Origin: Paramoeba atlantica
Lineage: Eukaryota; Protista; Discosea
NCBI GenBank assembly: GCA_977017575.1
Contig: CDRNVI010000033.1
Coordinates: forward strand, 113,516-177,515
Length of the DNA stretch: 64,000 nt
Reading direction: 5' to 3'
In this document: positions 13,430 through 17,599 of the stretch, in pieces
How positions within the stretch are numbered: the first letter of the stretch is position 1
Layout: the number at the start of each line of letters is the position of its first letter
Notes under the pieces: model-generated
Database searches by the model: none
The model's input: only the letters and a program-made list of their open reading frames with translations
What the model was told of the DNA's origin: nothing
Made by a program: the position numbers and the translations under genes

Positions 13430-14026
13430 ATGATTCAAAAATATCTAGATGCTGCAGTCCAGAATGTCGAAATAAATTATCGTTGTGAAATACAGTTACC
13501 TGGCCCTGCCTTGCAACTCTTGGGGAAAACGATAAAGTTTTATGGAAGGGAGCTCTACACAGTGGCTTGCCATTTTGCATGTCAAAAGCAGGAAAATGAT
13601 ACAGAAATTCTGTCCCATACGACGCGCTGTACAAAGGAACTATCACGTGGGGACCCGGATGGCGTTGCGAATTCCCCCAAAAATGCTTTAGCGAAACATT
13701 GCAGCGCTATTTCTACGATTAATTTGAAAAGAAGCATCTTAATATTTCCTCTGCACTCCCACTTTTTCGTTGATCTGGAAAATAAGTGGATAAATATTGT
13801 CCATGAAAGATACATGTTAAATAGTGTGGCTGTTAGAATCTGTGCTCCTACAAAGGCAGACCGTACTGTTCAGCAGAATGGTCCACAACTTTATACCCGG
13901 TCAAGCGTTGAACTTGTAACATCACATCATACCTTAAACGAAAGACCTCGACCAAAGAGAATTCGAGTTATTACTTCACGTCAAACGTCAAGTGCAGCAA
14001 AGATGGAAAGTTCACATGAGACGTAG
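13430..14026 (+). CDS. Hypothetical protein
   Basis: 198-aa ATG ORF on the common strand; no family recognised. Confidence 0.35.
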   Translation: MIQKYLDAAVQNVEINYRCEIQLPGPALQLLGKTIKFYGRELYTVACHFACQKQENDTEILSHTTRCTKELSRGDPDGVANSPKNALAKHCSAISTINLKRSILIFPLHSHFFVDLENKWINIVHERYMLNSVAVRICAPTKADRTVQQNGPQLYTRSSVELVTSHHTLNERPRPKRIRVITSRQTSSAAKMESSHET

Positions 14027-14126
14027 CCTCATTGATCTGGGACGTGGATCGTGCTCCCCCATTTGGGAAGGGTATTGGTCCTGTGGGCGAAAGCCTGTCC
14101 GAGAGCGATGCAATATTCAGTACATA

Positions 14127-14266
14127 CACCCATGGTCAGAAGTGTGCCCCCGGCCTGGCAAATGTCAATTTTTTTATCCATTTTTGCTCATTTTTGCAGC
14201 ATTCGAGAGATCTCGTTCCCCTAGCGAAGAGCTTTGCCGCCTTTTTTTCATAGGGGACCCCCTGGT
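14127..14266 (+). repeat. Left terminal inverted repeat of the Tc1-like element
   Basis: Reverse complement of 15564-15702. Confidence 0.92.
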
Positions 14267-14373
14267 GCTCTGGTGGTGACCCCAAATTAGACCAAAAACA
14301 AAAAATGGTACATTAGACATCCAGAAGAAAACATCACCCTTTCAATGATAAAATGAGAAAAAAGGAAGAAGTA

Positions 14374-15465
14374 TCAATATCCGCAGTGCTCCCCATTGGT
14401 CTGAATAACTATTTGCATACGTTTGGGAACAGAATTGATGGAATTCAACACTTTCTGTCTATGTGGGGCACGTTTTAGAGCATTAAACGCCTTTTCTATG
14501 GCCTTTGTCAGGGTTACATAGTTATGTGGCTTAAATTTTTTTTGTACCATTTTGTTTATCAAGCTCCAAACGTTCTCAATAGGATTGAGATCTGGAGAGT
14601 TGGGGGGCCAATTCATAAGAGGAATGGTACAGTTTATAAGCTCATGCTTTACCAAATTATGGGTTGTGGCGCTATCCATTTGAACCCATACAATTTCCTT
14701 ATTTTCCTTCAAATACTCTAAGAATCCTTGTCGTGTTTTGAAGGCCCTTAGAATAGTTTCGCCCTTTACTTTGTGGGCGTCTGCATGGCTCACACCCCCA
14801 ATTGGCTTGAAGATATGCAAGAAGCCGTGGGTTTTGCTTATTCCCATCCATGCCATAACACCCTTCCCCCCATACCATCGTCTGTTGCGACACCGTATCT
14901 TTTTGGGGCCCCCCTTTTTCCCAATAAAAAAATGCTTACCCCCATGAACACCACACATAAAGAGTTTTTCGTCGGTCCAAATTATATTATCCAACTTTTG
15001 GGGGGGAAGAGAAAGCAACTCGTTAGCCAATGCGACACGAAGGGCTTTATGCCGTTCGGTGAGGTCACAGTTCCGTGCCTTGGCCATCCTCGTGTACCCT
15101 GAGTTATGTAATACACGAACGACTTTCTTAATGGAACAATTGTACCCTTTCCTTTTTAATTGATCATGAACCAAGTTGTACGTCAAGCAACCCTCTTCCT
15201 TTGTATTTTCCTTATCAACTATTGATTTCACCTTTGATACAAATCTTTTTGAAGGCTTTGGCCTACCTGATTTCAGTGGAGATGACAGTTCATTACCTTT
15301 TTTTGAGAGATTAATAAATTTTCTAATTGTACGGCGGTCACGATCAAAGTTTTTATGAAGTTGGGTGATGCTGACGCCAGATTTGTGCTGTTTAACTATC
15401 TCTGTTCTCTCCGAAATGGACAAAGCCATGTTTCGTTTGTGACTTATACGAGGCGGGGTCCTCAT
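14374..15465 (-). CDS. Tc1-like DDE transposase, 363 aa
   Basis: N-terminal HTH-like region, GRP linker, WTDEK, QMDSA, WPPNSPDLNPIENVW; only long - strand gene in the window. Confidence 0.95.
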   Translation of the reverse strand: MRTPPRISHKRNMALSISERTEIVKQHKSGVSITQLHKNFDRDRRTIRKFINLSKKGNELSSPLKSGRPKPSKRFVSKVKSIVDKENTKEEGCLTYNLVHDQLKRKGYNCSIKKVVRVLHNSGYTRMAKARNCDLTERHKALRVALANELLSLPPQKLDNIIWTDEKLFMCGVHGGKHFFIGKKGGPKKIRCRNRRWYGGKGVMAWMGISKTHGFLHIFKPIGGVSHADAHKVKGETILRAFKTRQGFLEYLKENKEIVWVQMDSATTHNLVKHELINCTIPLMNWPPNSPDLNPIENVWSLINKMVQKKFKPHNYVTLTKAIEKAFNALKRAPHRQKVLNSINSVPKRMQIVIQTNGEHCGY

Positions 15466-15563
15466 GAAGAAAAAACAGGGAGAAAAAAGGATGATATACT
15501 AAAAGAATTGACTGTGATCCGAAAAAATGGGTAAAAAACCCATGTTTTTTGGACCCAGGGGGT

Positions 15564-15702
15564 ACCAGGGGGTCCCTATGAGAAAAAGGCGGCAAAGCTC
15601 TTCGCTAGGGGAACGAGATCTCTCGAATGCTGCAAAAATGAGCAAAAACGGATAAAAAAATTGACATTTGCCAGGCCGGGGGCACACTTCTGTCCATGGG
15701 TG
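15564..15702 (-). repeat. Right terminal inverted repeat of the Tc1-like element
   Basis: Reverse complement of 14127-14266. Confidence 0.92.
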
Positions 15703-16404
15703 TATATGCAAACTACAGTTGGTTCTACATACAATGTTGAGGGAGATACTACTCCCTCGCTATCCCATATTAATAAAATTTGGCCCGAAATTTGGCCCGA
15801 CAAAAACTTTTCCGGAAGAAGTTTTTTCACAAAGAACCAAAGGCAGCACCATAAATACATGTAGATAGTTTTAGGAGAGAAAAACGCACCTTTTGGACCA
15901 CTCGAGACTTCGGAAGCGATTTGCAAACCCCAATTTGCCATATACTTTTTTCAACTTGAAGCGTGGGATGCGCAAGACCGTAGAAAAAAACCAGATCCAA
16001 ATCATTCCGGATTGCTCCGGACGGTCACTGGCAAGCCAGACCCTTCACAGACAGATTTTGAAGTTCCGAGACCGATGTCCTCTACCAGTTTCTGCTTGTC
16101 CAAGGCGGCACCAACGTGCTGTTACCAACACGCTGCGTCGACGAATTGTACGTCAACACGGCTTACTCAAGAGGTGTAAGCCGGGTAAGGGAGCTGGTTC
16201 CCTGAGGGGAGGGTCCGGGACGGTCCTCCGAGTACTGGGCCTAGTCGGTTCTCCGCCCAGCCTCTTAGAGTGAGGCCGCCAGGAATAATGCGATGAGCGG
16301 GTTTGAACTCGCCATCTCAGCACCATGTGCTTCAAACTTTGAATTCTTGCCACTCCGCCACCTCCGCTTAAGAGAAGACCGTAGAGGAAGAAGGAGGCGC
16401 AAGT

Positions 16405-16508: not shown

Positions 16509-16690
16509 ACCCAGGGTAAAGGGGACGAGGGAGATACCAATAGTGTAGGTGCAGCAGTTTCACACAGGAAATACGGTGTCTCCCTTATGGCATGAAGACC
16601 GGTGCCTAAAAAGGTGGAGATGCCGTTTTTCCCGTGGGAAACTGCCGAACCTACACTATTGATATCTCCCTCGTCCCCTTTACCCTGGGT
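16509..16690. mobile_element. Putative foldback/MITE-like element (57-bp inverted arms, 68-nt spacer)
   Basis: 16509-16565 versus reverse complement of 16634-16690: 53/57 identity; no clean TSD. Confidence 0.6.
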
Positions 16691-16801
16691 TTAATAATGA
16701 ATTTATGGCACATGATTATGTGCGAAACAAGTGCAGAATTTGCTTCTTTATTTCGTACTTCCCTTAATTCATATTTCATCCTTTTTCGAATTTTCAAACG
16801 C

Positions 16802-17599
16802 ATGATAACCTGTCCTGTGTCTGTGTTGGCAACCCTGACAGTAATCATTTGTCCAGATGCTCCTCGAGACGCAAAAAGACGGAAAATGATGGCCAGTACT
16901 GCTGAAGAAGGGGGGCTTCGTACTTTTACCCAACATTTGACTTACTATCGCTTTTCTTCGGAAGCACCTACGTGGCTATGGCCTGGTGTCTTTACTAATG
17001 AAATTCGCGAGATAACTGCCCTAGATTGGTCACACTTTAATCTTCAGGGAAACCTAACTTGGGAAACGCTTCCAGAAACAATGCGAGATATAAATTTGGA
17101 GAATAACTGGCTTCGTGGGTCAGTGCGTTTCGAAAATTTGCCCGCCTTGTTGCAGTACTTAACGGTCGCCTCAAATCGTCTGTCTGGTCCCATTGATCTG
17201 ACAAATTTGCCCCTCGCACTCAAATCACTTATTGTGGTGGACAACATGTTTTCTAGTAATATTGCTCTGGATCGACTTCCTCCGTCACTTGAAGAATTGA
17301 ATTTGGGACGTAACCGCTTATATGGGACGCTCAATTTTACATCGCTGCCTAAAAGTTTACGTCGCTTAGAGCTTCATAGAAACAGTTTCAGTGGAGAAAT
17401 AGATTTGCAACGATTACCTGAAAATATGAACCGTTTGAAACTTTACAATAATGATCTTTGCGGGCAATTGAGCTTCACGCAACTTCCCTCCAAGTTACAA
17501 GTTTTATATTTGGAAGGTAATGTGTTTAGCGGTTTTTCTCGACCACCACCTCAAGGAACAAATGCCTTGTTCGTTAATGATACTGTCATATATGTATAA
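16802..17599 (+). CDS. Leucine-rich repeat protein (plant/protist-type LxxLxLxxNxLxG repeats)
   Basis: Repeats such as LPALLQYLTVASNRLSGPIDL, LPPSLEELNLGRNRLYGTLNF, LPKSLRRLELHRNSFSGEIDL; start uncertain (ATG 16802 or 16886; ORF open from 16634). Confidence 0.88.
   Translation: MITCPVSVLATLTVIICPDAPRDAKRRKMMASTAEEGGLRTFTQHLTYYRFSSEAPTWLWPGVFTNEIREITALDWSHFNLQGNLTWETLPETMRDINLENNWLRGSVRFENLPALLQYLTVASNRLSGPIDLTNLPLALKSLIVVDNMFSSNIALDRLPPSLEELNLGRNRLYGTLNFTSLPKSLRRLELHRNSFSGEIDLQRLPENMNRLKLYNNDLCGQLSFTQLPSKLQVLYLEGNVFSGFSRPPPQGTNALFVNDTVIYV

Follow-up and report, generated by a model that had tools for sequence, protein, structure and literature searches.

Kinetoplastid genomes are a textbook case of retroelement-only repeat content, and the locus described here raises the question whether such a genome can also house a complete cut-and-paste DNA transposon. 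The window, i.e. the whole stretch of 64,000 nucleotides that was analysed, covers positions 113516-177515 of contig C33 in a 45.7-Mb assembly of 248 contigs (G000). The original prediction had proposed at this place an apparently intact, young class II element of the Tc1/mariner type, which had either been retained in an early-branching kinetoplastid or had come in horizontally. With a probability of roughly 0.8, positions 14127-15702 of the window are a full-length, autonomous-type IS630/Tc1/mariner transposon in the nuclear genome of a prokinetoplastid-like kinetoplastid, which belongs to a clade with a DD32E catalytic signature and is the best candidate source of transposase for a group of 746-bp derivatives.

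The transposon proper is 1,576 bp long and TA abuts both of its ends, at 14125-14126 and, as read directly from the flanks, at 15703-15704. A single inverted pair was obtained by repeat detection (14124-14261 and 15568-15705, 138 nt, 96% complementary), and together with the alignment it placed the left terminal inverted repeat (TIR) at 14127-14264 on the plus strand and the right TIR at 15565-15702 on the minus strand. The termini were determined to be CACCCATGG, starting at 14127, and CCATGGGTG, ending at 15702. In the left TIR, the outer ~45 nt, beginning with CACCCATGG, are family-specific, and the inner core (14168-14262, plus strand, mirrored at about 15567-15661) is strongly conserved. 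The sole long open reading frame (ORF) within the element, 14374-15465 on the minus strand, is stop-free and encodes 363 amino acids. The complete ORF, the near-identical TIRs of about 140 bp and the TA duplications that had been claimed for the element were thereby all recovered.

The identification of this frame as an uninterrupted transposase gene is based on Pfam and NCBIfam models, a match to SB100X, the catalytic triad columns and a structure model. In Pfam, DDE_3 was matched above the cut-off with an E-value of 2.6e-7, accompanied by weak matches to Tc3-type helix-turn-helix (HTH) domains. The only solved structure detected by sequence was the catalytic domain of Sleeping Beauty (SB100X, E 1.3e-9). 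The AlphaFold model built from a 94-sequence alignment had a mean predicted local distance difference test (pLDDT) value of 91.3, and its comparison with known structures by Foldseek resulted in a full-length match to Mos1 (E 2e-12) and in template modelling (TM) scores of 0.70 with Sleeping Beauty and 0.77 with SETMAR. Helices 17-55 and 73-121 correspond to two HTH units, and GRPK is found at residues 67-70. The catalytic domain, approximately residues 135-363, includes the glycine-rich box YGGKGVMAW and the C-terminal G..GY. In the catalytic triad D165/D264/E297, both D165 and D264 were invariant and E297 was at least 90% conserved in the 94-sequence alignment. The spacing between D264 and E297 is 32 residues (DD32E), because two residues are missing after a conserved H relative to the DD34E relatives. 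The same spacing was found in five members of different families (the window protein, P0002, P0004, P0388 and P0391), whereas the relatives outside this organism are DD33E or DD34E. Judged from its sequence and the model, the protein is a transposase of the Tc1/mariner fold with an intact DDE triad, for which catalysis is predicted.

Four features of the IS630/Tc1/mariner superfamily were present: a TA target-site duplication (TSD), TIRs around one gene, a bipartite HTH region with an RNase-H-fold DDE domain, and a complete triad. The assignment to the class II Tc1/mariner superfamily, and the intact appearance of the element, therefore stood. With the Tc1-like elements (Tc1, Tc3, Sleeping Beauty), the window element has in common the TA duplication, a single ORF with two HTH units joined by a GRPK/GRPR-like motif, the glycine-rich box, SPDLNPIEN with the catalytic E, the C-terminal G..GY, and long inverted ends as in elements of the inverted repeat/direct repeat (IR/DR) type. 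However, the strict Tc1 spacing (DD34E) was not found, there being 32 and not 34 residues between the second D and E; the termini of the window subfamily are CACCCATGG and not CAGTG, and the protein is at most about 30% identical to any outside Tc1-like protein. The mariner elements (DD34D; Mos1, Hsmar1/SETMAR) share the fold over the full length and the TA duplication, but the third catalytic residue of the window protein is E297, inside SPDLNPIEN, and not D; in addition, Pfam Transposase_1 was unmatched and Mos1 was not detected by sequence. The bacterial IS630 model of NCBIfam (NF033545) aligned with residues 20-330, and the DDE triad and TA target are shared. The score of 76.7 bits was nevertheless under the cut-off of 100, there was no match in 72,556 plasmids, and the window element lies in a eukaryotic gene cluster. 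No pogo/Tigger DDE_1 or CENP-B-type domain was reported by Pfam at E-values up to 0.01. A Merlin element is not indicated either: the DDE_Tnp_IS1595 domain was absent in Pfam and the TSD is TA instead of 8-9 bp.

The kinetoplastid nature of the genome, which the original prediction had assumed, was supported. On both sides of the element, downstream to 39 kb, all ten ORFs of at least 250 amino acids are encoded by the plus strand; they include PP2C, RabGAP, ProRS, Vps16 and CCT-alpha. Searching by pattern for the kinetoplastid spliced-leader core yielded 11 matches compared with 0 in the control, and 10 of the 11 read CAGTTTCTGTACTTTGTTG. This core differs by one base from TTACAGTTTCTGTACTT, the spliced leader described as prokinetoplastid-specific in Papus and Apiculatamorpha (PMC7859406). 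The best named matches of CCT-alpha were from Trypanosoma (60%), Perkinsela (58%) and Neobodo (57%), and in a tree of 38 CCT-alpha sequences the host and Perkinsela formed a clade with a Shimodaira-Hasegawa-like approximate likelihood ratio test (SH-aLRT) support of 100, the sister group being Neobodo plus trypanosomatids (SH-aLRT 99). According to this one protein tree, the host reads as an early-branching, Prokinetoplastina-like kinetoplastid other than Perkinsela itself. As a separate observation, a spliced-leader sequence at L033:1480-1560 (G000:C3:645510) stands after a poly-A run and immediately before what looks like coding sequence starting with ATG, an arrangement that resembles a retro-copied mRNA or a leader-targeted element.

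The element belongs to a large group in this genome. A second contig carries the same element in the same flanks (C21:396351-397933), C33 and C21 being 99.1% identical over 4.58 kb, and many other family copies are likewise paired with identical flanks. Much of the assembly is therefore present as two haplotypes or as very recent duplicates, and raw copy counts are about twice the number of sites. The DNA search with the element yielded this allele and a dozen or more derivatives of ~746 bp, which consist of element positions 1-409, a short filler and positions 1254-1576; in addition, it detected fragments, copies with other deletions and a sister family of 66-71% DNA identity. Since the window copy is the only uninterrupted coding copy found in its subfamily, it is the best candidate source of transposase for the ~746-bp derivatives. 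The protein search of the genome (112 of the 1,037 candidates scored, 115 matches listed) resulted in more than 100 related matches, many with open frames. The families at 55-58% protein identity include three uninterrupted copies of 382 amino acids. Further families were found at 45-50% and at 35%, followed by a large group at 30-36% with many uninterrupted frames of 374-400 amino acids, which is known from the match table, proteins of the ENA assembly and one ENA locus (L066). The sister elements that could be read have long TIRs, TA flanks and ends of the CAGTG, CAGTC or CACTG type.

The inner TIR core (95 nt) of the window family was 94-98% identical to that of families with a transposase identity of only 50-58% (L039, L040, L041, L052 and others). 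It had 424 first-look places in the genome, of which 40 were scored, all with at least 95% identity, and a shorter motif of the core was also seen in families further removed. RNA folding of the core was unremarkable (z of -2.2 and -1.4) and the DNA-binding region of the protein was conserved no more than the catalytic domain; the conservation of the core is therefore explained neither by RNA folding nor by the DNA-binding region. One allelic pair of shortened copies differed in structure. L006:1503-2539 (C21) and L015:1503-2248 (C33, 26.9 kb upstream of the window) differ by an internal segment of 298 bp, outside of which they are 98.5-99.75% alike. L015 is only ~91% like the other 746-bp members, and it bears the junction filler CTACAAAG typical of the entire 746-bp class. 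The structural difference suggests conversion from an ectopic copy.

The target-site duplication and the recent movement of the family were determined from the flanks. TA was present on both sides at 10 of 11 independent family insertion sites. The 746-bp derivative L023 (flanks G000:C65:27254-28008) sits in a repeat present 484 times (motif ATAGAAGAAAAAAATATAAAAGGGGGCTCCG), and the uninterrupted copies of this repeat have the exact length of the L023 flanks joined by one TA. They thus represent the paralogous empty site in its classical form and confirm the 2-bp duplication. Nested repeats are abundant in this genome. Two further short copies, C19:161567-162316 and C16:392475-393224, have their flanks adjacent in the homologous contigs C43 and C29, respectively. 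C43 (G000:C43:313470-313502) reads AGTTTTCATGCA-GTTTTTCGTA-TA-TAACGGCGT, and the occupied allele reads AGTTTTCGTGCA-TA[element]TA-TAACGGCGT, the difference being a 10-nt filler. C29 (G000:C29:427777-427798) reads AGAGACCCC-CCTG-GATATGGCT compared with AGAGACCCC-ACACTAATA-TA[element]TA-GATATGGCT in the occupied allele, i.e. an 11-nt stretch (9 flank nucleotides plus TA) was replaced by CCTG. Both changes are located exactly at the insertion point and neither is a clean single-TA site. The junctions read as excision scars that end joining closed with added filler or with loss of nucleotides; alternatively, the element may have been inserted and the site mutated locally afterwards. Whichever holds, only one of the two haplotypes carries each of these short derivatives. 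Between sites, the identity of short copies reached 98-99%, which is comparable to the haplotype divergence. Some derivatives were thus excised or inserted after the haplotypes diverged. For L022 and L024, searches for an empty site yielded either nothing or unrelated matches.

The age of the window copy is a separate matter. The original prediction had taken the near-identical TIRs as a sign of recent or current activity. This argument falls, because neither end serves as the template of the other during insertion, so that their similarity is uninformative on age. The claim that the element is young was borne out for the family, which moved recently according to the short derivatives, the hemizygous sites and the copies of 98-99% identity, but not for the window copy, which is shared by the haplotypes, has an allele with a stop, and shows differences that look neutral. 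Recent mobility accordingly holds for the short derivatives of the family and not for this copy.

Several results weigh against the main reading of the element. Its insertion is common to the C33 and C21 haplotype contigs and therefore predates the 0.5% haplotype divergence. In the C21 allele the frame is broken by a TGA stop, and the corresponding ENA gene call is divided into 247 + 101 amino acids. The two alleles differ by 1.52% inside the element versus 0.53-0.60% in the flanks; in the coding region, 3 synonymous and 8 nonsynonymous changes were counted plus the stop and a 3-nt insertion, with a ratio of nonsynonymous to synonymous differences (pN/pS) of 0.71. Against other copies, the pN/pS of the window ORF was about 0.7-1 or higher, which looks neutral, and 17 of 1,000 judged positions differed from the majority of the other independent copies, 12 of them nonsynonymously. 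The open frame may be a matter of luck and the protein impaired. The ORF runs antisense to the genes of the host cluster. With the window copy the short derivatives share no more than 88-95% identity, and therefore their parent was another variant. The inner TIR core is also found in the sister families, by which the short derivatives could be cross-mobilised. Both empty sites lack the canonical footprint of TA plus 3 nt, which is atypical for Tc1/mariner elements, and the placement of the host comes from a single protein tree.

The rival explanation that survives best, with a probability that is considerable though below even, is built on part of these results. According to it, the window copy is a well-preserved dead fossil whose frame is open by chance, and it was the sister families, with the inner TIR core in common, whose transposases recently moved the derivatives. 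The neutral substitution pattern with its 12 nonsynonymous departures from the majority, the already broken C21 allele, and the several uninterrupted 382-amino-acid sister copies with 94-98% identity of the core are in agreement with this explanation. In contrast, the outer ~45 nt of the TIR, where the Tc1-type transposases cut and bind, differ between the families, and all the catalytic and structural motifs of the window protein are intact in a confident model. The window element is preferably read as the autonomous-type member of its subfamily. We infer that its protein is active and that the derivatives owe their movement to this copy and not to a sister family. If it works like Tc1, Sleeping Beauty and Mos1, the transposase would bind to both inverted ends (~138 nt), excise the element and integrate it at a TA, which would thereby be duplicated. 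The DD32E clade has split into many families inside this genome.

A more far-reaching explanation, which we consider unlikely, takes the DD32E clade for an ancient, still-active lineage adapted to the biology of kinetoplastids. The inner TIR core would then be a functional module needed in a promoter-poor, polycistronic and trans-splicing genome, and end joining, either microhomology-based or templated, would seal the excision breaks, hence the atypical scars instead of the classical footprint. Candidate roles of the core in this case are a site for a host or transposase factor and an inward-reading splice acceptor composed of a pyrimidine tract plus AG.

The origin of the element was studied by protein searches and a tree. 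A word-index search found four close proteins followed by a drop to 26% identity; P0001 and P0002 are on contigs of ERZ24900291, and the other two are likewise from ENA. In an exhaustive HMMER search of 1.84 billion representative proteins, only 10 matched at E 1e-30 or better. Those of the 10 that were traced are from ENA contigs of the assembly of this organism, and one that was looked up directly lies on ERZ24900291. The best outside matches were a 352-amino-acid protein from GCA_029981815.1 (29%, DD33E) and pseudoscorpion proteins (28-32%), all below 33%. In the FastTree phylogeny of 207 proteins, by which the transposase was placed, the eight rows that represent this organism, each standing for a family or cluster, formed one clade with an SH-like support of 94 and with P0251 as the sister (99). 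The DD32E clade is, as far as the available sequences go, found only in this organism so far. Because the families are 30-58% identical to each other and still form one clade, long residence and not recent arrival is indicated.

Recent horizontal transfer, for instance from an amoeba host, prey or a giant virus, is accordingly very improbable. The Tc1/mariner elements are known to move between species, and an IS630/Tc1 transposase is present in a giant virus of the kinetoplastid Bodo saltans (PMC11544213). However, the close matches that were traced come from the assembly of this organism itself, the outside identities of the best matches are 28-32%, and neither two scans of the viral sequences in IMG/VR nor tblastn against the 72,556 plasmids gave a match. 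The arrival from an amoeba host, which had been offered as one of two origins, is thus disfavoured by the single deep clade of the sampled families and by the lack of a close outside relative among the 1.84 billion representative proteins. Still less probable is a domesticated transposase gene that is no longer a mobile element. Domestication has been suggested for the Merlin transposases in Bodo and Perkinsela (PMC8101967), but the long TIRs, TA duplication, deletion derivatives, presence/absence polymorphism, broken allele and neutral substitutions at the window locus all speak against it.

The integrity of the assembly was also considered, as a chimeric contig would undermine the findings. 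The ENA assembly ERZ24900291, which may derive from the same data as the present assembly, has a contig with the order ProRS, LRR gene, element, RabGAP that is 99.93% identical to the C21 version. Given the identical junctions on C33, C21 and the ERZ24900291 contig, an assembly chimera is unlikely. Logan short-read contigs (four runs of one study) compared with the region left the junctions unbridged, being too short to bridge them. An assembly artefact or a contaminant contig foreign to the kinetoplastid, which these unbridged junctions and the apparently mixed or metagenomic source might suggest, is the least credible of the explanations in view of the junctions repeated on two contigs here and on the ENA contig, perhaps of the same data, and of the ProRS, Vps16 and CCT-alpha genes carried by the same contig on one strand, CCT-alpha being of kinetoplastid affinity.

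In the literature, only retrotransposons had previously been reported in kinetoplastids before Merlin transposase relics without TIRs or TSDs were described in Bodo saltans and Perkinsela as the first DNA transposons (PMC8101967, 2021). Like the window family, the Merlin relics are class II elements of non-trypanosomatid kinetoplastids, often antisense to or outside the gene clusters. They belong, however, to another superfamily with an IS1595-type domain and look inactive, whereas TIRs, TSDs, derivatives and polymorphic sites are all present in the window family. The transposase of the Bodo saltans giant virus is DD34E (PMC11544213). The Diplonema genome paper lists MULE- and Helitron-like ORFs and no Tc1/mariner, and transposons are unmentioned in the prokinetoplastid genome survey. 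In the literature searched, which did not extend to Repbase and Dfam, nothing besides the Merlin relics was found on Tc1, mariner, miniature inverted-repeat transposable elements (MITEs) or TIR elements in kinetoplastids, and 'DD32E' was absent from the transposon papers. The premise that these genomes essentially lack class II elements thus holds as far as no Tc1/mariner paper for kinetoplastids was found, but it had already been dented by the Merlin report.

The complete Tc1/mariner element, its MITE-like derivatives, the hemizygous sites and the genome-wide radiation of families with many open frames show that a polycistronic, trans-splicing genome is no bar to the persistence and diversification of cut-and-paste transposons. 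This suggests that their absence from trypanosomatids is a loss. The family also offers a natural system for the expression of DNA transposons without a promoter of their own and for the repair of excision breaks in a lineage from which classical end joining is reported, for trypanosomatids, to be missing. The value of the element as a native transgenesis tool, which had been put forward, is modest, because a heterologous mariner is already in use in Leishmania.

A further part of the element, from the right TIR to the start codon (15466-15567, minus strand), is a pyrimidine-rich leader. On the minus strand it reads TCAATTCTTTTAG, then CCTTTTTTCTCCCTGTTTTTTCTTC ahead of the ATG, and the pyrimidine content is 64% on the upstream side of the ORF versus 50% at the opposite end of the element. 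From its composition, the leader is a candidate trans-splice acceptor and 5' untranslated region. The neighbours of the element, to which it lies antisense, are a small, expressed-looking gene at 13430-14026 and the LRR gene at 16634-17599.

Other repeats were observed in the window. A dispersed repeat of ~380 bp lies at 15985-16368, with 280 bp between it and the right end of the element. At least 40 scored places match it at 94-96% identity; it had 483 first-look candidates in the genome and a very high depth in public runs. A foldback of ~170 bp at 16513-16686 has perfect-looking arms of ~25 nt and overlaps the start of the LRR gene ORF. In Rfam it matched only weak microRNA-precursor models, far under the cut-offs, and it is probably a further MITE-like element. 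At ~40000-64000, a tandem array with a period of 2,770 bp and at least 9 units continues past the end of the window; its GC content is ~50% with a steady negative GC skew, and neither an ORF above 176 amino acids nor an Rfam family was found in it. Finally, a contig of a public run (X4) fuses the spliced-leader-like letters TCTGTACCTTGTT to window position ~13397, just upstream of the 198-amino-acid ORF at 13430-14026, and this small gene beside the element may be trans-spliced and expressed.

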